A program made the position numbers and the translations under genes. Source: Takakia lepidozioides (lineage: Eukaryota > Plantae > Bryophyta). From it: 31,779 nt of DNA. The stretch lies in the NCBI GenBank assembly GCA_030704615.1, contig JAKLZA010000322.1:1-31779 (forward strand). The letters run 5' to 3'. This document shows, piece after piece, positions 3,248 to 28,314 of the stretch. Numbering within the stretch: position 1 is the first letter of the stretch; each line of letters begins with the position of its first letter. The notes beneath the pieces are model-generated. The model was not told the origin of the DNA and did not search any database. It worked only from the letters and a program-made list of their open reading frames with translations.

Positions 3248-6200
3248 TTACCCAGCAGAAGAGCAATGAGGGTGCAGGGTCTTTGGCGTACTAGCTCCAG
3301 AACTCTGTCCTTTCCATCTTCTTCTCGCCCGGGCCATCAAGACCCGAGCCCTGTTGCCTGTGATTGATTGAACAAACTCAATTTTCAGTTCGATTCTGTA
3401 GATGTTTGCTGGTGTAAGGACACATTGTCTGAGAATGGGCCCGTTACAATTTCAGAAGTATCAAATCACCACAGCACCTAACATGGAATATTAGAGATGT
3501 ACACCTTGTTGACAATTGGGTTGCTATGCCTTAAGGGCCATCAGCTCTGCAAGGAAGATGATTGCTCTGTTTGAGAATGTGGATGCATCTATGTTGTATA
3601 AGCTTGTTTCTGCTCCGTAGCTTTCACAAGAAAATTTTGGTCAAAAAATAGGTTTTACAGTTGTGCTTGAGGACAAATGCAGACGACGGATAGATGTATA
3701 TGTTCACCCCTATGCAGTAGCGTACTACCCTTCACAGAGGCAAGTGTCGGATTAAATCCACCAGGGCAGCAAGCATCCACATTCACACAGGTGACAACAG
3801 ACCCTAACAGGTGTTGAGTGTTGATATACGAGCTGGCATGTCATGGCCTGTACTTAGCTCAAATGCAACACATGTGACCATGTTACACACTTTACAATGA
3901 GAACAGTGACCATAGCCCTCTGGTTACCACAGATCGCTGTGATTACACTGTCTGTCACACCATGGGTACTTAGAGCGGGAAGAGGAGTGAGAAGGGGGGG
4001 CGGAGACAATGGTGCAAGACTAGAATTACCATAACGGAGTTGGCCTTGGCGGGCGAAGTATACAAAACCACATGCTACCATCCAGTCCGATGCACTGAAA
4101 TCTTTCACCCTCTGCATCCCGAAATCCAATCATCTGGAATTGGGTTATGTGCACTCGGAAAGAAGACACCCTAGAACAGAGTTCTATAAGCATGTAGCTG
4201 GAAAGGCACTGCTTGAAGATTGCTTCTTTGTCAAGAGCTGAGAAGGTCTTACAGTACATTTTGTCACAACTTCAAGCTGACTCTGAAGTTATTCCATCAG
4301 CAGTTTCATCTCAAAAGACAACATTACCTCAGCAACACCCCTTATGCCAGTGGGGTATTCTTTTACATTTTTCCCTCCGTTTGCTGACCATCCTGCAACA
4401 GACACCCCCACAGAAACTAAGTGTCCCATGAAGACCTCATGTGCTGGAGTCCAGTATGTATAGGGCACCTAGACAAGCTCAACTGGATGGGGTACCAGCT
4501 GATATTGAGGAAAAGATGAACTTCGCAAACACAACCACACATCATACCAGAGGCTTTCCTGCCAAAGTCCATTTCCAAGAAACACCAAGTTCCAAACGAC
4601 CCACTGGCAAGCTACTTAAATGTCCCTTGACGTATAAGATGGCTTGTTTTATACCCATGGTGGATACAACCACTGATCACCTGAACCTTTGATTCATTTA
4701 TGATGCAAGGATTGTGAGCTAGAGGGGGTGGAATACATGCCATACCAATCTGGATCAGGCTATACTCAAGGCCACAACTCCCTTCCAGAATATGGTCATC
4801 CATCACTGAATAAAAGCCCTAGCATCCCTCACATGATCACAAATTAGTGGATGCTGCACTTAAATGTGGAATGAGAATTTTCCTGTGAGAACGTCTGAGC
4901 TCATGAAGAAGTGCAAAGACCAGCAGGCATCAGAATCTGTCAGGGAGCCTCAGAGTGGACTCAATAAAGTTTCTTTCATTCTTTCTCTCTATCATCAGGC
5001 GTGAGCTGATGGAACTTCATATTAGTCGGACCTGGAAACCAGTCCATCTATGGGGAGACATTCTTGGTCCTACGCAATGATAGAATCTTACAGCCCAATG
5101 ACTTGTTTGCAACTCTATCTCCATCTCTTTTAAGGGCATAGCGAAGGCGGGTTCCCACAGGCTGCAGACGGAGACTGATAGGTGGGACAACCTGCAGCAT
5201 GCTGACTGCTTGCGCTAGAGATGACAGGAGGGAAACTGAAGGATGTTTCTTCTTTCACTGTCCTCTCTACTATTAGATCCGGGGGAGATACTATTGCCCA
5301 ACCAAGATAGCCAATCCCTTACAGAGGTGTTCCACTACAACGATCAGAAATACTTGGCAGCACATCTGCTGGAGGTGTGAAATCTTAGACAACCCTTAAT
5401 CAAGGGTTATTTCTGGGCTGCTCATTGAGGGCCCCACTCCCTTTCTTGTTTCCTGCTTCCCCTGGTCCTGTAAGCTCTTCGAGCTTTCCACGGAAGTTAT
5501 GACATGTCTGTAGTGTCATTCTCTCTTAATCAGAATTGAGACTTGTGCTGAGGGGGTTGAAATTGTAGCAAACTAGTGCCATTGTGGTGCTGGACATTTA
5601 GTATCACTGATGTGCAAAGGTGCATGAAATATAATTGGTTTTGTGCATGGTATATGTACAAAATGTCCAGTCATCACTAAAGTCTCATTCCTAGAGGAAT
5701 TCTAGTAATGAGCCCAAAATAGGCGTACCTCACAGATAATTGAAGTCTCATCAAAGCGAAGATGTCTAGGCAAATCTGTGTCACATCGCCATCGTGTGTT
5801 TCGGCCATCAGGTCTTATGTTTATACACCGCACCATCTCTGTCCCTCTCAAAAAAAATGTTGTCTCAGCAACTGCAACTCACACCTCTTCATTTGCAACA
5901 TTGACCAGCTTGAGACAATGCCCCATGTCAGCCCATGACGTCAAATCCTTCTATCTCTATATGTGGCTCTGGCTAAGACTCCTCAAATCCAATGTGTCTC
6001 TCTTCATACAGATGTTCACTATTCACTTGCCCCATCCTTCTCCTCAACCCTCAGCCCTCTCCCACTGTGTTCTCTCTATCAATGCCCCTGCTATGTATCG
6101 TGATTGCATGCATGAAACAAGTTTACTTTTCAAATCCCTTGTACATTATCCAGGGCATTCCAGTTTACTCTGCTGCATAGGCCAGTCACCCAAAATTCAT

Positions 6201-6676
6201 CAGTGAAACAAGTTTTTTGGGGGTCCAAATGAACTAATGACTGCTCCCACTCTCCAACAATGAAGGACAGTTTGGTAGAGGGGAATGAGGTGCACTGACG
6301 TAGATAAGCAGCAAACATCGAGGCTCGCAACTTACCATAGGGTAGATCAAACCCTAGATCTGAGTGGTGAGGTGACCTGCAGCTGGAGACATGAAAAATG
6401 GATAGTGTGCTAGCGGTTGAACAGGTCGAAGAAAAGAATATCAATAGGCTGAAAATATGGCCCGGACATACCAGGCTCAAAATCACAGCCCTTTAAACAC
6501 CTGAGCTGAGGAATGGGCGACGATCTTCGGTACGTGGTATCACGGCCTTTGTAGAAAAACAAAGTCTTCGCACTTTCCAGAAGAAAAGGCCGCCCATGGG
6601 GCGTGTATTGTCCCCTCACCCCTCCCATTACTAGTATGGCTACAATCAATGCATGCAACCCCTTCCTCCATGGCAT
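3248..6676 (-). CDS. SARAF: SARAF/TMEM66-like (DUF1183) protein, ~214 aa. Exons 6676-6472, 5838-5729, 4818-4746 (well supported); 4392-4328, 4111-4030, 3357-3248 (tentative)
   Basis: Phase-compatible GT-AG exons give MPWRKGLHALIVAILVMGGVRG (signal peptide) then QYTPHGRPFLLESAKTLFFYKGRDTTYRRSSPIPQLRCLKGCDFEPEMVRCINIRPDGRNTRWRCDTDLPRHLRFDETSIICEGFYSVMDDHILEGSCGLEYSL. This matches recalled SARAF motifs TTxRRxxPIPQLKC, QWECKTDL and CEGY...VLRGSCGLEY, with all six Cys present. An alternative in-frame ATG lies at 6697. The 3' exons rest only on splice sites and frame. Confidence 0.8.
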
Positions 6677-9057
6677 ATCCCGTGTAATCCAATTCATCGA
6701 AGTGGGAACCTCCTCCCACTGACACAGACTGCCAGCCAGCAAGCTTGAACTTTCCTGCAGCTGCTAAGTAAACACACCTTCTATGCGTCTCTCCCTCCCT
6801 CTTAATCAAACACCCAGCACTTATCTTCTCAATCCAGTCTGGTCCTCTCATCCATTTGCAAATGTTTTCCAAAAGTTGTCTGCAGGACTTCTCCGAAGTA
6901 CGTCCTCTCCAGTCTCCCGGGCTTACACATACCCAGATGCGCTATGAGTGGCAAGATTTGAGTGTAACCCAACTCATGATTTCAGGAACATACACCAGGA
7001 TAGATGCAAAATTTGCAAAAAACGCTTGCATTTGCACCGTCGTCACTGAACCTTCGAACTAGGAACGCAGGCCAACAGTCGTCAGCCTCGAGTACTACCT
7101 TATTGCCATTTGGATCGCGCTGTCGAGATGCAGGGAGGTGTGGCCAAACCCGCACAAGATCATTGCCACTGCACGACGGTTCCCACTGGATTGAACGTTT
7201 TCTAATGAAATGCTCCCTATCAAAAACTGGCCACAGCTTATATCATGGGCGAACGTTAAGACAGATGTGTTCCCATTGCGCTCTAGTGAAACAGCCCACA
7301 TTCTCAAATCCCCCATGACAAAAGAATTTGCTTTGGTACTCCGCCATCCTGTCTCTCGACCTGAATTTGAATGAGCAGGAGGAGGTACATAGCTGAGGAG
7401 CTAGGCCGGTCGATGGAGCCCACCTTCATCCCCTGGGCTCATGGATTGTCATCTTGCATGACAACAGCTCCTCCTGTAATTCCAACCATAGCTCTGAAGC
7501 TTTCGAAGCATGCAATTGTGTACTTTGAAAAAGACGACGGAGGAAACCTTGTCGGATTCCCTCCAGCATTACATATCGATCAAAGAAACAGAACAGATTC
7601 ACAGTCCACAGGCTCATTACATGGGATCTAGAAAAGAAAGGAGTACTGACTTTGTTGGGGAGGAGTTGGTGGTATTTGCAGTTGTAACATAAATGCATAG
7701 GGACATACACTGACTGAGAGTGTGCTGCATTTTGTGAAAGGATGAAGATCATGAGCCCGCATGTTCTTCTCTGCTCACAATGTGGATCCATCCTGGCCAT
7801 GTCATCTTTAAAGAGATGGGTTAACCAAAATGGGCGGTGAATCAGGAGGGGCCTCTTCCTGACAGCCTTCGGGAGAACTTGTGGGAGAACTTGTGGGTAT
7901 ATGGCCACAAGGCACAGCAACTGAGTACCATGATCAATGATGGTCTCGGCGATTGCGGACCCAAAAATCAACTCTTCTGTGAGGTTGCAGACAGACAAGT
8001 ATATTATATTCAGAATATCCATACTTACATCAGGGAATGCACAAAGCAAGGAGTTCGTTCACATCTGCTTCCTCATCAAAATGATCCAATAATACATCCT
8101 TAAAATGGCAACCTTCGAAAACGTTATATTTTCAGACGTGTCCTCAACTCATGTATCGATAACTGTTTGCCACATGGCATCTGCCAGGTGGCTGTCAGCA
8201 TATGTTCCAACACAATGATATTGATCTCCAGCGATGCTCCCAGGGGTGGTCACATCTGCACAAACCATACCAAAATTTTATTTTCACTTGAGAGCATGAA
8301 TGAGAAACACACCCCTCACCGCATCTGATATCCACTTCAGCAGTCTAAGCAAATATCTAGAAGCCACTAAAGATGTATATCAGCACAAAAGGCAGCGGCG
8401 CCAAGATAAGTACTTTCTCTTCTTCCACATCTCGAAACCCCACTGCAGCGGTGTCTCTATTAGGGCACAAACTTTGCCTTTAGGATGATATGGGCAATGA
8501 ATGTCAAAAATTGCATCATTGACCAGTGTGGGTACATGGCATCTGCAATCTATCCCCAACCAACGAACAGAGTCAATTACACAAAGACAAAGGAAAACAC
8601 CACGCATCTGCACAGCTTTTAAATCTGACATTTTGATGTATTTCTAGTATTATACTTGGGGTTAGATCATCTCAATTATTTATTTGAGCTACATCGCAAT
8701 CGCAAGAGGAAGGAGAGATCAGTAGTGACACTTCAGAGTCCAGCAGTAGCATTTCCACTCTGGAACATCAACATGTAAAAACAGCAGCTCACTGTTGAGA
8801 GTCTCATTTTTACCAGGTAAGAGTTCTACTAACAGGTATGATCACACAGGGGGAGACAGAGGGTATCCAATTATTTGCATAGGGAGGTGTGAGGAGTTCC
8901 AAATACTAGGCCTCCTAAGCTCCATGCTGGTGGGAAACTTGGCAAGGGTCCCACCTTCTCCGTTGACTATATGTAAATCTCTGGAGTACTTGAGGATTTC
9001 ATACCTTAAACAGCAGCGTCACAAGAACATCATGCACTTCTTTTCATATGGCTTGTT

Positions 9058-11610
9058 TCACCAGTAATCCCCACAAGAACAAACCCCGTCTTGGAAGTGG
9101 TGAAAGCGGTTGGCATCCCTTACAACAACTGCTCGCCCAACAAGCTTTGAGATGAACTTGGTGGCGGTGTGACAGTCACCACACACCCGGAGGTTCTTGA
9201 TGACACGGATAGGTGTCCCAGGGGCCATGCTTATGAGTCCGAAAGAAATGGCCAGCCTCTCACTGTGGTAGCAAAGACAGATTTCCTTTCGCTCCTCCTC
9301 CACATCACGCAATAAAAACCGTGTCTCGGGCACGTACCCAGCCTCTTTCATTTGCCAAGTCAGTCTCTTCAGCTCAGCATGGATTTCCTCAATTTGTGGA
9401 TGCAACTCGTCTTCTACCACAAATGTATGCACCTGGTTGTTGACCTCGATGCAGCTGCGCCCTGGCTCCTTTCTGATCCCTCTGTCCTCCATCATTTTCC
9501 TCACCTTTGCTTTATCCTCCCACCTGCCAGCCGCCGCATATATGTTCGAAAGCAGCACATAAGTTGCAGCATCCTGTGGATCCCGATCCAAAAGGCATTT
9601 TGCAGTATGTTCTGCTAACTTCACATCACCATGAATTCTGCACGCACCAAGCAAGGCCCCCCACACCGAAGCATCTGGTTCAACTGGCATTTTATTAATG
9701 AAGTCTTCTGCCTCATGCAATCGCCCTCCACGGCCAAGAAGGTCCACCATACTGCCAAAATGCTCCACTGCAGGACTGAAGCCATGATCTCGACTCATGG
9801 AATCAAAGTAATGACGCCCTTCATCCACAAGGCCCATATGGCTACATGCACATAGAACACATGTAAATGTGATACCATCCGGCTTGAAACCTTCACGTTT
9901 CATTTGTTCAAATAGACGAAGGGCCTCTATTCCACACCCATGCTGAGCATATCCTACAATCATTGCATTCCATGACACCACATCTCTGTTGGCCATATTG
10001 TCGAACAATTGACGTGCTTCGTTCATGTTCCCACATTTTGCATACATGTTGACAAGGGCAGTCTTCAGAATGACATTTGGCACAATGCCAGCTTTCACAA
10101 TGGCAGTGTGAACCTGTTTGCCCTTTTCCAGGGCCCCTAGGCTGGCACACGCATCGAGAACGCAGGTGAATGTGACCCTGTCAGGCGTGAACCCTTCCTG
10201 TATCATTTGCTCATAGGTGTCGAAGGCCTCCCTACCACACCCTTGCTGGGCATATCCTGCAATCATCACGTTCCATGAGACCACATTTCGTTTTGCCATT
10301 TTGTTGAACACTTCATGTGCGTCGTTGATGCTCCCGCATTTGGCATACATGTCAGCAAGGGCAGTCTCCAGAATGATGTCTGGCTGAATTCCAGCTTCCA
10401 TGATGGCAGTATGGACCTGTTTGCCCTTATCTAAGTCCCCTAGGGTGGCACATGAATTGAGAATGCAAGTGAATGTGACCCTGTTGGGCGTCACCCCTTC
10501 TTGTATCATTCGCTCATAGATATCCAAAGCCTCCTTACCACACCCATGCTGAGCATATCCTGCAATCATTGCATTCCATGAAACCACATTTCGTTTAGCC
10601 ATATTGTCGAACACTAGACGTGCATCCTTTATGCTCCCGCATTTGGCATACATATCAGCTAGGGCAGTCTCCAGAATGATATCTGGCTCAATTCGAGCGT
10701 CCATGATATCAGCATGAATGTTTTTGCCTCGTTCGAGAGCCCTGAGGCTGGCACATGCATTGAGAATGCAGACAAAGGTGACCTTGTTGGGCACCACCCC
10801 CTCCCGTTGCATTTGCTCATAGATCTTGAAAGCCTCCCTACCACACCCATCTTTGGCATATCCCACAATCATTGTATTCCACGTAAACATATTTCGTTCA
10901 GGCATTTTGTCAAACACTTGTCGTGCATCCACCACACTCCCACACTTAGCATACATATTGACAAGGGTGTTTAGCAATGAGATGCTTGGCTTGAATCCAC
11001 TCTGGATAATGTGGGCATGCACCTGTTTTCCCTCTGTTAGGTCTTTCATATTGATGCACTCCAGCAAGACACTGACGTAAGTATGGAAATCTGCCTGCAT
11101 GCCTTGTTGGTTCAAAAAATGCAGCGTGTCTTTCAGTCGTCCTGGCTTATGTCGTGTCACCTCATCCTCAGAAGTGGCGGAATTCCTGCTGACCTCCTCT
11201 CTTGCACCTCTTTCAACAGTAGTAGTGAGAATGGAGGTGCTACGCCTGTCACCAGTATGATGTTGAACAAACTGATCTTGGTGCAACCCTGCCATCCTGC
11301 ATGCCTTGTCAGATACAGACATTTGACTCAGAGTTGCAGAGCACTGCACAGCTCCTCAACACTTCAATGAAAAATATCGGGCTTGTTGATGCATATTGAC
11401 AGGGATACAAACTACTGTAGGTACATCATGTGTTTAAGTTAGAAATCTTGAATCATGATCATGACAATACCTGTTGTATTCTCGGTGGGGAGCTCCATGA
11501 CGTACTGATACATTAGAACCACCGAAACATCGTGCTCGAACTTGTATAATGGCGGCTAGCTCTGCTTTCACCGAAGCAGCTTTCAACCTAGCCCCCCATG
11601 CAAATGACAT
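9058..11610 (-). CDS. PLS-class PPR protein with E1/E2 and DYW cytidine deaminase domain (organellar C-to-U editing factor). Exons 11610-11471 and 11296-9058 (~792 aa)
   Basis: The 763-aa ORF 9058-11349 carries 14 P/L/S motifs, E1 ([11 protein letters not shown]), E2, PG box [18 protein letters not shown] and terminal CSCGDYW. The upstream exon [32 protein letters not shown]...EYNR is preceded by an in-frame stop, ends AG|gtattg and fits the acceptor gcatgcag|G at 11297/11296. The main ORF is certain; the 5' exon is of moderate confidence. Confidence 0.95.
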
Positions 11611-15600: not shown

Positions 15601-18600
15601 ACATCTCCAGCCACTGGGTACAAATGTACAGGTGTGTATCAAGTCACAGTGTCATTAAATGGTTTTGTCAACATTGTAGAAGTACCTGCTACCAATTAAC
15701 CAAGTCCTGTTTCTATCTTAGAGATATCTGTGTAGACATGGAATTGTTGTTCAAGTATGTGGTTCAATCAGAATTTAGTAGGCAGGGCGAACTAGGCTGT
15801 GCTGTTGTCACTTTTGTGATGACCATATCCTCTCTATGTCCTCTCTCCAAAAAGCATCCAGATTACATTTCACCAGATTTTAAGTGCAGTCTTTCTGGTC
15901 GACTGCCCTTACTCTCTCACCCCTCAAGGCCAGCCCCCAAGACGAGAAATGAGTTTGCAGGGCTTGATATGTAGCTGAGGGTGGTTCACACGTAAATGTC
16001 CTTGGAGATTTATGTTTTCATTACTAAACTGTGAGGGTTGGGGTGAGTACACAGCACATTTTTAGCAAGTAAGACAAGCCACAAGGAAATGGGAGACAGT
16101 AAGAGCACCCTGCTGCGTCTGTACTACCACCACCGCTTCTTCATGGGCTACTGCGCCATTGGTGCTGAAGTATTGACCCACTTCTCTATACAATTCTCAG
16201 ATTGTTTGCACAATTCTGAATTTGCCTAAATAATATCAATGAACTGACCTGCCTGATTCACAGGTTCATACCTCATACTGTGAGACAAAATTTTGTGGCC
16301 TTGACCCTAAAACTGTTCATCTGTCTCCTCCCTTTTGGCCCTCCTTTCCTTACATCCATTTGTTGCCGTTGCTGCTTGCAGTGTTTGTTTATGCCAAAAC
16401 AAGAGAATTGTTTCATTGATCATCTTATTCACAGACCTCAAGTTACATGAAATCAGCTTTACTCAAGACAGTAACCTTGCTAGCTGTCTACTATCTGACA
16501 GATGAACCTTGGGAGACAGAGAGAGACTTACCTTATTAGGTGTATGGTATATAGGTGATGTGTCACTTCAGCCATTCTGTCCCATGCCAGTTGTGTGGTC
16601 GCAGTATCTGTAACTACCTGTGAACTTTGAATGATTCCAGAATAATTTGAGCCTTCACTCTGCTATTTCGATTGAGATTCCATGTATATTATTTCGTACA
16701 CCAAATATAAAATCTATTTTTTGTTAGAATGAGTTGTGATTAACCTGCTGTATTTCTGTGGGGTCAACTTCCTAGTGGTATGTCTCCGGTCAGGCATTGA
16801 AAGGGTAGTATAGCATGGCTTGCTGCTTGTCACCAGGTACATGCCCCTGTAAAGTGGGCCTGTCACATGGTGACACATGTAATGGGTATTGCAGATAGTA
16901 AGCTGTATGGTGCATTTTGTGGGTCAGGTTATGTATCTGTTTTTGTACATCCTTGCATCAGATGGGCAAAATGAAAGCCCCCTTGAGGTACTCTTCGCAT
17001 CCTTCGTCTTCTGTCATCTTTTGGTGGAGGAGGATCCATGTTCCACACCAATCAATACTTGATTTCAGCTTTGATTTTGGTTCTCCTTCTCTAATCTGGA
17101 AGGCCGCCATCACTCCACGATCTGTATTGTATCAATAATGCAACATGGCATGTCAGGTTACACTAACCTGAAGTATGAGTATGGGACATATCTCCCCTCT
17201 TGCATGGAAAATCAATGGTCCTCATGCTCTTCCTACTGCATAGTGCTGAGATACCCTGCAAACTTAGCCAGTACCAGTTGCCATTGTTGTGAAAGCAGTT
17301 GCAGTCAACATGTGCTTATTGTATTGTAGTTAGAGAGATTCATTCAGGTACACTCATATATGGGGGGGAGTACTTGTCAGCCCAGGGTGAAACTATATGC
17401 ATTTGTAACATATATCAACATGACCGGTTTAGAGCTTTTCAGTTTGCTTTCAAGACTACATTTGGTGGGTGCATCTTTTGTGCAGGTGGTCATGCAGACG
17501 CCATATTATGTGGTGGTTCTCCTTGCTGCCTTACCAGGCTGTGCCATCAAGCAATTAGTCAATCTGGTTCAGGTACTTGTCTACCACGCATTGTAGAGAG
17601 ATGTATTTATTGGCTTGTAGGTCAGTTAGTGACTTGCTGTCACAGGTCTGTCTATTTATAGAAAAAGGTATTCACATTATCATAGTGTAAGTATCACAGC
17701 ATGTTCTCAGCTTTGCACTCTAGGACAGGCCTGTGTCTTTTTCCCCGTCCCGAGTCTTACACAAGTCCCTCCTAAAATACTCCCCAAGGACTCCCCCCCT
17801 TGCTCTAAGGATACCCTTTGGTATCCCTTGCTACCCAAAGGCCTAACACTTGGCCTTTGCCATTCTAACCTAGGCATACTAACCTAGTCTGTGACATTCT
17901 CTACCCCTTCAAGATTGGTCATTGAGCTCATCTTTCTCGAGTGATAAGGCAAGGGAAATGATACAAGTACACAAGCTCTCTCAAACTCACATACTTGCAC
18001 ATGAAAACATCACTCATATATTAAGTCAAGCCAAGTGCACCCCACGCCATGGGGAATCCACACTACGGCGCCATAGCTAGACACGGTGAGGCTCAACTCG
18101 AGAAAGATGAGCCCACCGCGATCTGCCGTGAAGATAACAATGTCAGGTGCCCAAACATTTATTGGCCCCTGGATTGACGGAGTCAAACTCGAAGAAAAAG
18201 CCACGCGGACAGAGGGAGACGGGGAAGTTGTCAAGTTATTTTACCACTAGTGTGAAGTTAGCTAAAAAATAGCTAGCTTTTATATATTGACATTTGGGAT
18301 TGACCCATGACAAAGTCTGGGTACTGCTTCTTGATTGCTTGCTCCGACTCCCAAGTAGCATCCGTAAGAGGAAGCCCATGCCAAGCAATCAAAACTTCCT
18401 TGATGAGCTGATGACGTAACCTGCGCTCTCTTCTATCCAAGATTCGCCACGGTCCATGCTCATCATTGTTAACCTCATGTAGAAGTGTGGTGCCTTCCAC
18501 TAAGTTATCCCCATTGTGCAAGTACTTCTTGAGCTTGCTAACATGAAAAACTGGATGTATCTTGCATAAAACTGGAATTTCTAGGTTGTATGCCACATCA

Positions 18601-21600
18601 TTAACTCGTTTCACAATTAGACAAGGTCCACAATATCTAGGGGATAACTTTTTGCAACTCTTCATTTTACTCTTCCCTTCCTTAAGGGTTGTGGCTGAGG
18701 GTGGGATCAAAAGAAACACTTCATCCCCTTCCTCAAACTCTCTATACGTGCTTTTCTTATCCGCATATGTTTTTGCCCTATCTAAGGCTTTTCGAATATT
18801 CAATCTTGCACTTGCTAGCTGTTCTTGCATCTGAGTAACAAACTCCGTTACACTTGGTACATCATTCTTTGAAATACCAACAGCAATTGGGCTGGCTAGT
18901 CTATATCCATACACTAGCTCAAATGGACTTACTCCTGTAGAAGAATGTTTCTTGTCATTGTAGGTGAACTCCAACAATGACAAATTCTTTTCCCATGTAG
19001 TCTGTTTCTCACCCACATAGGCTCTCAACATATCCTCTAACACTTGGTTGACCCGCTCAGTCTATCCATCACTTTTGTGGATGATCTCCACTGTCATGTT
19101 CAACTTGGTTTCCAGAATCTGGAAAACCCCTGTCCAAAAATGACTTGTAAATCTAGGATCTCTGTCCGACACCATGGAATGTAACTGAAAGATTTCTGAA
19201 TGAACAACTTTGCTACCTCAGGTGCTCCTACCATCTTCTTGGTAGGAATAAAATGTGCCATTTTAGACAATCTGTCCACCACAACCAGAACTGCATCTTT
19301 TCTCCGGAGGCAAGTCAGTAATAAAATCCATAGAAATGCTCACCCACCTACCTTGTGGAATTTCCAATGCGTGTGGATTTTCGCCGTTCTGCCTTAGTAA
19401 CTTGACATGTGAAACAATGTGTCACATACTCCAGAGTGCCCTGCACTAGGGCTATCATGTGATTCTCTAAGAACCTTCTTTCGAAGCTCTTGGAGATTAG
19501 GCACATAGATCTTTCCATTTCGTTTCAGCACCCTGCCTTCAATGGTATATGATGAATACGTCTGAACTTCTGCAGTGGCCTTTGACTGAACCAAACTCTC
19601 CTCTTGTGCATTAGTACTTTGGTTAACCTTGTGGCACACTGTATGGATATACTCATCCTTGTCCCTGGCTACTCTTATTTCATCAATTAGAGTGCTTTCT
19701 ATTATTGTAAAATTCATCTGATACATAATCCGAGATAGTGCATCAGCAACCACGTTCTACTTACCCTTCCTATATAGAATTTCCATGTGGAATTCTTGCA
19801 TCAACTCTGACCATCTAGCTTGACATCCCGAGAGATCAGGCTGGTTACACAAATAAGTAAGGGTCTTGTGATGTGTATAAACTGTGAATATTGCCCCATA
19901 CAGATAATGTCTCCACACCTTCAAATCATAGATTATAGCACATAGCTCTTGCTCATGTGTGGAATATCGTCGTGGATTAAGTTTCCTACTTTCAAAAGCG
20001 ATTGGCCTACCCTCTTGACTGAGAACAACACCAATTGCTATGCCACTTGCATCTATTTCCACTACAAAAGGCTTCTGAGGATCTACAATCGCTAGCACAG
20101 GTGCAGTAGCAACTGCATGCTTCAATAGATCAAAACTTTCCTGTTGTACTTCAGTCCAATCAAATAACCTATTGGCTTGTACAAATCAGTCATTGGGGCT
20201 GCTATCTTTGAGTAATTCTCAACATATGTCCGATAGAACCCAGCCAACCCCAAAAAAGACTTCAAAGGTGTTACCCCAAGGGGCCTAGGCCATTGGAGTA
20301 TAACCTCCACCTTCTTGGGATCCATATTTACTCCCATCACTGACACTATATGCCCAAGATACTCCACCTCTAGTTTGAATTGCTTATATTCGCATAAAGT
20401 TTAGCTTCCCGTAATGTAATCAAAACTTGATGAAGGTGACCAACATGATCCTCAATGGTTCTATTGTAGACAAGAATGTCATCTATAAAATCCACCACAA
20501 ACTTACCCATGAAAGGCCTCAAAATATCGCTCATGAGCATCATGAATGTCGTTGGAGCAATGGTTAACCCAAATGGCATAACTAAAAATCATGGTGACCA
20601 AATCTTGTCCTAAAGGCTGTTTTAAACACATCTTCTTCTCGTATCCTGATTTGGTGGTATCCACTCTTTAAGTCAATCTTACTGAAGATAGTGGCTCCCT
20701 GCAAGGCATCCATCAAATCACCGATACCCGGCATGGGGTAACGGTGTTTAATAGTAATCTTATTCAATCCTTGATAATCAATACACATCCTGTACGACCC
20801 ATCCTTAGGAACTAGAAGAACTGGAGCAGCAAACATGACCTAACCTCAGATAATCCTCTAACATACCTTCTACCACCTTTTCTTCTTTAAAACTGGTCCT
20901 ATAAGGAGGTCTACACACATGACTAGACCCTGAAAAGCCTATGCTCCACATTTCTTTTGGAGGTAATATACTTGGTAGCTCAGAACAGAACAAATCTGAA
21001 AATTCAGCTTGAATTGTATGCACCCAACTAGTTCATGCAATCGAAGTTTCTGAAGTTGTATCAGTATGCTCTTCTAACACCTCTTGCAAAAAGCATAGGT
21101 TTAGATACTTCAAACCTTTTTGGTGCACTCGCATGGCTGTGATTAATGGTGTATCCGGCAAATCTCTCTCCCCACGAAGCAGAATGGTCCTACCATTATG
21201 CTGAAACTGATACACCTGGGTGTTGAATCAATGATAGGCTTCTTTTGGGGCATGCCATGCTTTGCCTATCACCAAGTCATATCTGGCCAGCTTGGTAATT
21301 TAAGCTCAGGTTCTCATTTGATAGATCAACTGGAGACTAGGGCCCATATCTCAGTCCTTTCCCGTCAGCCATCTCTACAGTATATTGGTATTGAGAAGGT
21401 TCCATGGGAAGATTTAGCTTTTTAACCATCCGAGAACTAATCGCATTGTGTGTTGAACCAGTGTCAAACAAGACATTGACCTTCTCTCCAGCCACTTCTC
21501 CGATCATTTTGACAAGATGAGCATAATCAAATTGGTAGCCCTGACTTGCTTCCTGTGACAAAAAACAATCGGCAGCCCTTGCCACTGTCTTCTTCATGAT

Positions 21601-25176: not shown

Positions 25177-28314
<3,138 letters not shown>

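Follow-up and report, generated by a model that had tools for sequence, protein, structure and literature searches.

A spliced SARAF/TMEM66 homolog gene in the moss Takakia lepidozioides and the missing conserved cytosolic tail of land-plant SARAF proteins

The SARAF family in animals, fungi and plants

Animal SARAF (TMEM66) acts as a brake on the refilling of calcium stores. Its cytosolic C-terminal region binds the SOAR region of STIM1, and the channel is inhibited even without the luminal domain, whose contribution is modulatory only; no calcium site has been seen in the luminal domain, and a redox role has been proposed for its disulfides (PMC8391525). The closest described structures are those of the human luminal domain (6O2U, 6O2V and 6O2W). 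Fungal members of the same family (DUF1183; e.g. Aspergillus fumigatus Afu6g04410) occur in hosts without Orai and STIM (PMC7016017), and an A. fumigatus family member is found among the genes induced by acute ER stress (PMC3197630). For plants, a recent calcium review describes the store-operated machinery as lacking in embryophytes and raises the question of whether they have such entry at all (PMC11894410). The words 'plant' and 'fungi' never occur in the SARAF review cited above (PMC8391525), and SARAF is never mentioned in the paper on the evolution of ER calcium (PMC7016017).

A literature search for SARAF, TMEM66 or DUF1183 in plants found no such paper, and returned fungal and animal papers or authors named Saraf. 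The presence of SARAF in bryophytes is already known to databases: the RefSeq name of the Marchantia protein is 'store-operated calcium entry-associated regulatory factor', and the Ceratodon and Riccia proteins are named SARAF in UniProt. The initial annotation of the DNA studied here knew of no functional description of such a gene in plants; this agrees with the literature search, and the novelty that it saw does not extend to the family name. New here are the spliced model of an apparently unannotated moss gene, a tree that indicates vertical descent, the apparent absence of the family in seed plants, and the finding that land plants have lost the conserved cytosolic tail.

Gene model and family assignment

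The window, i.e. the whole stretch of DNA that was analysed, comprises 31,779 nt of the Takakia lepidozioides genome (GenBank assembly GCA_030704615.1, contig JAKLZA010000322.1, positions 1 to 31,779 of the forward strand). The SARAF gene is located on the minus strand and is represented by three exons (E1-E3) with canonical GT-AG borders and compatible phases (1, 0, 1), supplemented by two proposed exons (E4 and E5); the coordinates of all features are collected in Table 1. Three spliced exons had been recognized at these positions before, within a gene span of 4746-6676, and the three exons were confirmed by their borders, by their phases and by matches of each of them, in order, to the Pfam SARAF profile (PF06682). 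The span itself was revised at both ends. ATG 6697 is the first ATG of the open reading frame, in frame and seven codons upstream of ATG 6676, and it lines up with the N-termini of the Ceratodon purpureus protein and of the ORF called on a related, unannotated contig (L001; see below); from this alignment, ATG 6697 is more likely to be the start codon than ATG 6676. At the other end, the gene appears to extend below position 4746 by at least two further exons, for which E4 and E5 are proposed.

Table 1. Positions of the exons of the T. lepidozioides SARAF gene and of neighbouring features in the window
Feature	Position	Strand	Length (nt)	Acceptor	Donor	Phase at end	Remarks
Exon E1	6697-6472	-	226		GTATGT (GT at 6471-6470)	1	splice borders of E1-E3 checked by script
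Predicted signal peptide in E1	~6697-6611	-
Exon E2	5838-5729	-	110	...GGGACAG (AG 5840-5839)	GTACGC (GT 5728-5727)	0
Exon E3	4818-4746	-	73	...GCTAG (AG 4820-4819)	GTATGG (GT 4745-4744)	1
Exon E4 (proposed)	4392-4328	-	65	TTGCAG	GTAATG		linker exon, luminal domain to membrane segment
Exon E5 (proposed)	4111-4030	-					membrane-segment exon, K-D-F-S-A-S-D-W-M-V-A-C-G-F-V-Y-F-A; 3' end either spliced at GT 4029-4028 or read through to the stop at 3859-3857
PPR-E-DYW ORF	9058-11349	-
Ty3/gypsy chromovirus pieces	18273-20125
Zinc-dehydrogenase exon	27928-28314

E1 encodes a predicted signal peptide, called from its hydropathy and n-region: the n-region is basic, and the hydrophobic core behind it spans 12 residues (ALIVAILVMGGV; Kyte-Doolittle 2.82). 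The luminal domain begins further on in E1, with the motif PIPQLRC and two of the cysteines. E2 encodes the middle part of this domain, with the motif WRCDTDL and three cysteines, and E3 contributes the motif GSCGLEY and the sixth cysteine; the CEG motif is assembled over the E2/E3 junction (C-E from E2, G from E3). All six conserved luminal cysteines are located at invariant or near-invariant columns of the alignment. The signal peptide, the six cysteines and the motifs PIPQLxC, WxCxTDL, CEG and GSCGLEY of the initial annotation were thus all recovered.

The proposed exons E4 and E5 were placed by manual comparison with L001 and with the Ceratodon protein. The comparison provides for E4 a counterpart in L001 of equal length, with identical borders and a conserved W-S-x-N-G...K-E pattern; the E4 region also gave a weak collinear tblastn match from the Ceratodon protein (E about 2), and a Pfam scan of E4 returned no match. 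E5 matches, by position and motif, the transmembrane segments of L001 (K-G-W-T-A-S-W-V-V-V...) and of Ceratodon (K-G-W-S-A-S-W-I-V-I...). A tblastx comparison against L001 and a second related contig (L002) detected nothing convincing past E3 at E 0.01. The complete set of E1-E5 contains zero stops and zero frameshifts, and all of its splice sites are canonical. The membrane segment of E5 is short and contains an Asp; its hand-computed Kyte-Doolittle mean is about 1.1 over 15-16 residues at the homologous position, compared with 1.5-2.3 for the best 15-residue windows in the plant relatives. Given this weak, Asp-bearing segment, this copy of the gene could be impaired or differently anchored.

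For the family assignment, the exons were searched one by one, not as a joined spliced protein, against PF06682 (333 positions; curated cut-off, 30.8 bits). E1 alone matches profile positions 4-54 (E 7.9e-8, 32.8 bits), E2 alone positions 56-101 (E 6.5e-9, 36.3 bits) and E3 alone positions 103-124 (E 5.7e-5, 23.4 bits), i.e. E1 and E2 each exceed the cut-off singly. Furthermore, E2 alone retrieves human SARAF among the crystal structures, namely the luminal-domain chains 6o2u (residues 52-86) and 6o2v, and the E1 region is matched by tblastn with moss, fern, liverwort and Chlorokybus proteins. Three collinear, phase-compatible profile matches on the same strand, all with canonical splice sites, go far beyond what chance would produce. 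On the evidence of its sequence, the locus is a real spliced gene for a SARAF/TMEM66 homolog; the identification made in the initial annotation, for which a profile search had been proposed as a check, is upheld exon by exon.

A comparison with the fold of the human luminal domain had been proposed as well, and was made on the Ceratodon ortholog as a stand-in for the window's own joined protein. In the AlphaFold model of the Ceratodon ortholog (mean pLDDT 80.7), a sandwich of eight strands is followed by a linker of low confidence, by a helix that spans the membrane and by a single helix on the cytosolic side. A Foldseek search of this model against the PDB gave 6o2w and 6o2u as top matches (E about 3e-11; rmsd 2.0 A over 108 columns; 38-39% identity), and no other fold was found below E 0.1, with the next match at E 0.4. 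The likeness to human SARAF comprises the signal peptide, the motifs PIPQLxC, WxCxxDL, CEG and GSCGLEY, and a luminal beta-sandwich whose six cysteines correspond; a single membrane segment may be common to both, judged by the weak segment at the homologous position in E5. Unlike human SARAF, the moss protein is much shorter and has no counterpart of the conserved tail that binds STIM1 SOAR (PMC8391525), and the swapped beta9-beta10 strands of the human dimer are not confidently modelled in the Ceratodon ortholog, for which only eight strands are predicted, residues 131-152 have low pLDDT, and the region of the swapped strands is short. The product of the window gene is predicted to enter the secretory pathway and to have the luminal fold of SARAF.

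Other features predicted in the window comprise an ORF for an intronless PPR-E-DYW RNA-editing factor, of a type typical of land plants, broken pieces of a Ty3/gypsy chromovirus, and one exon of a zinc dehydrogenase. These neighbours have no functional link to the SARAF gene.

Relatives, descent and selection

An exhaustive HMMER search with E1 returned 29 matches in 1.84 billion representatives, including proteins of the moss Ceratodon purpureus (KC19_VG333900), the ferns Psilotum and Adiantum, the liverwort Riccia, and the streptophyte alga Chlorokybus. A profile word search with seven green-lineage queries added Marchantia and Adiantum capillus-veneris, the algae Klebsormidium, Spirogloea, Closterium, Mesotaenium and Mesostigma, as well as fungi and animals; the occurrence of homologs in fungi had been stated in the initial annotation. 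A search with a fern luminal domain returned only fern, alga and liverwort proteins and one unnamed protein. These three protein searches, of limited sensitivity (one with a 68-residue query and two word-indexed), found no SARAF in seed plants, none in Physcomitrium or Selaginella, and no full-length protein close to the window gene. The proposed loss in angiosperms agrees with this result, which is an absence of matches and not a proof of loss. Given that no match was obtained in Physcomitrium or Selaginella, the distribution of SARAF in plants may be patchy or under-annotated.

The closest relatives of the window gene are located on the two unannotated contigs L001 (ENA) and L002 (Logan), in which E1-E3 have identical borders and the introns have diverged. 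The identity is 69-73% to L002 and L001 for E2, and 86% to L002 for E3. The window exons match moss sequences best, and the luminal domain is about 50% identical to that of Ceratodon; E1 and E2 show 41-55% identity to the luminal domain of Chlorokybus.

A maximum-likelihood tree was calculated for 39 family members, from which the window's own protein was left out and in which the Ceratodon ortholog served as its stand-in. The streptophytes form a single clade (98/93) with Klebsormidium as the outermost branch; Chlorokybus with Mesostigma, and Closterium, also split early. The land-plant clade (97/89) is sister to the zygnematophytes Spirogloea and Mesotaenium (support 94/87), so that land plants are placed beside zygnematophytes within the streptophytes in the phylogeny that had been proposed as a further check. 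The tree mirrors the accepted species tree of streptophytes, which indicates vertical inheritance; on this phylogeny, the moss gene is shown to be inherited vertically from streptophyte algae.

The comparison with L002 over 117 codons, with counts summed per exon, gave a dN/dS of 0.16 at a dS of about 1.2. The coding sequence has thus been maintained, and the SARAF gene is under purifying selection.

The cytosolic tail and the proposed role of the moss protein

The streptophyte-algal proteins (Chlorokybus, Mesostigma, Spirogloea, Mesotaenium and Closterium) belong to one clade with the land-plant proteins and differ from these in the cytosolic part, for which the algae have kept the full animal/fungal-type tail. 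The coverage of the Pfam SARAF profile reaches 333/333 in Chlorokybus and Spirogloea, whereas it ends at 139-209 of 333 in the five land-plant proteins that were scanned (including Ceratodon, Marchantia, Riccia and Psilotum); for the window gene, the read-through version of E5 gave zero Pfam match to the SARAF tail (profile ~210-333). A motif check gave a corresponding result: neither a GFWxG-like motif nor the basic ...S-T-R-R-R end is present in any of the six land-plant sequences, and both are retained in six of the seven streptophyte algae. The fungi listed in this check retain the GFWxG-like motif, and a bird SARAF protein ends with ...G-T-K-R-R and is matched by the profile to 333/333. 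The land-plant orthologs (Marchantia polymorpha, Ceratodon purpureus, Riccia fluitans, Psilotum and Adiantum) share with the window gene the luminal domain, the membrane segment, the missing tail and, as far as tblastn shows, the exon pattern; their C-termini differ from lineage to lineage and show no relation in either sequence or length, and the membrane segment of the window gene is weaker than theirs. Fungal DUF1183 proteins differ in that their Gly-rich tail is kept. Land plants have thus retained the half of SARAF whose role is least understood, and have lost the half that bears the known mechanism.

Three other explanations for the moss gene were considered. An acquisition from fungi, animals or protists, which the initial annotation had held possible as an old horizontal transfer, might be suggested by the fact that the best-known members of the family are those of animals and fungi, and by its seemingly patchy distribution in plants. 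Horizontal acquisition is, however, ruled out by the tree, in which the streptophytes form one clade that branches in the order of the species, i.e. early algae, then zygnematophytes, then land plants; the spliceosomal introns at positions common to the window, L001 and L002 also argue against it, and its probability is close to negligible. The gene might also be a relic that is decaying, or has lost its function, in this genome. Such a relic would be consistent with the weak, Asp-bearing membrane segment, with the lack of a recognisable tail, and with the lack of a close full-length protein among the three protein searches; it is very improbable for a gene in which E1-E5 contain no stop or frameshift, the splice sites are canonical, none of the six cysteines has been lost, and dN/dS relative to L002 is 0.16.

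The moss protein might instead be a working part of an animal-like module for store-operated entry, regulating Orai together with a genome-encoded, STIM-like EF-SAM sensor. Orai has been placed in Physcomitrella and Selaginella (PMC7016017), and in the plant calcium review it is traced 'as far as gymnosperms' (PMC11894410), a range that overlaps with the spread of SARAF. This explanation is nevertheless unlikely: the STIM1-SOAR-binding tail is missing from all six land-plant orthologs, fungi retain SARAF without Orai or STIM (PMC7016017), and the three protein searches found no SARAF in Physcomitrium or Selaginella, both of which are cited for Orai. With the STIM1-binding tail missing in land plants, a STIM/Orai mechanism of the animal type cannot be assumed. 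Of the ancestral ER-calcium/Orai module that had been suggested for this gene, the vertical descent from streptophyte algae is upheld, and an animal-type module is not. A variant, in which SARAF, Orai and STIM-like EF-SAM proteins would constitute a plant store-operated entry that is coupled on the luminal/membrane side, not via SOAR and the SARAF tail, and that was kept with swimming sperm and lost toward flowering plants, is considered decidedly unlikely, more so than the animal-like module.

We consider it likely that the gene is a vertically inherited moss SARAF ortholog under purifying selection, which has lost the tail and encodes a luminal factor for the homeostasis of the ER store. The protein would carry a signal peptide and, on the lumen side, a six-cysteine beta-sandwich that a short linker connects to one membrane segment, which is weak in this copy; it would reside in the ER membrane. 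Without the Gly/Pro-rich cytosolic tail and its basic ...S-T-R-R-R end, the region that in animals binds STIM1 SOAR and brings about the inhibition of calcium entry, it would be unable to act as a STIM1 clamp of the animal type. Most likely it would act from the luminal side as a store-homeostasis factor linked to calcium/redox or to ER stress, either through disulfide-stabilised self-association or through contact with luminal parts of a partner. The presence of SARAF family members in fungi, which have no STIM or Orai, and the ER-stress induction of the A. fumigatus family member, support a STIM-independent core role of the family in the ER.

A third component of the animal store-operated system is thus present in streptophyte algae, bryophytes and ferns, of which the land plants keep the luminal half only. 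The family provides a concrete gene for knockout in Marchantia or in a moss. The conserved job of the family would, by the argument made here, lie in the ER lumen, and this has a bearing on what the luminal domain does in animals.

C-terminal tail and domain architecture across the SARAF family

The Gly-rich cytosolic tail of the animal/fungal type is kept in SARAF proteins of streptophyte algae (P0015, P0041, P0043, P0072 and P0074; P numbers denote family members from the protein searches), as is the C-terminal end ...S-T-R-R-R, whereas a motif check of six land-plant sequences found both absent from all land-plant members. Klebsormidium, with a short protein, is the exception among the streptophyte algae.

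For Ceratodon purpureus, the sole ortholog found (P0004) is encoded on the V (male sex) chromosome according to its locus tag, KC19_VG333900, for which six isoforms are annotated (P0004 and P0031-P0035); these diverge after the luminal domain. Two further members have architectures that are unusual within the family, i.e. P0009 (371 aa), with two SARAF luminal domains in tandem followed by one membrane segment, and P0012, with a duplicated N-terminal segment.

Neighbourhood of the SARAF gene

The ORF directly upstream of the SARAF gene had no match in the Pfam scan, and may be a chance ORF or a piece of an adjacent spliced gene. On L001, a related ENA contig with a counterpart SARAF gene, a fragment of a response-regulator receiver gene lies approximately 9 kb downstream of that gene; the window has no counterpart of this fragment.

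Features of the window and of contig L001
Feature	Location	Strand	Remarks
Three neighbouring ORFs	18273-19043, 19394-19753, 19757-20125	-	ORF listing
PPR-E-DYW ORF	9058-11349	-	763 aa, intact, no intron; domain scan
128-aa ORF	27928-28314	+	ADH_zinc_N match below threshold
207-aa ORF	7426-8049	-	directly upstream of SARAF gene, same strand
Receiver-domain gene fragment	L001 14326-14547	+	response-regulator receiver domain

Other predicted genes in the window

The three neighbouring ORFs represent a Ty3/gypsy chromovirus copy, split over separate frames; a domain scan of the outer two ORFs located RT RNase H domains in one, and an integrase SH3 domain and a chromodomain in the other. The 128-aa ORF, whose match to the zinc-binding dehydrogenase domain stays below threshold at 30.4 bits (cut-off, 31.8), is probably a single exon of a medium-chain reductase gene. 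The PPR-E-DYW ORF contains numerous PPR repeats and an E motif; at its C-terminus lies a DYW deaminase domain, whose last residues are DYW. It is a gene of the organellar RNA-editing-factor type; such PPR-E-DYW genes are typical of land plants.
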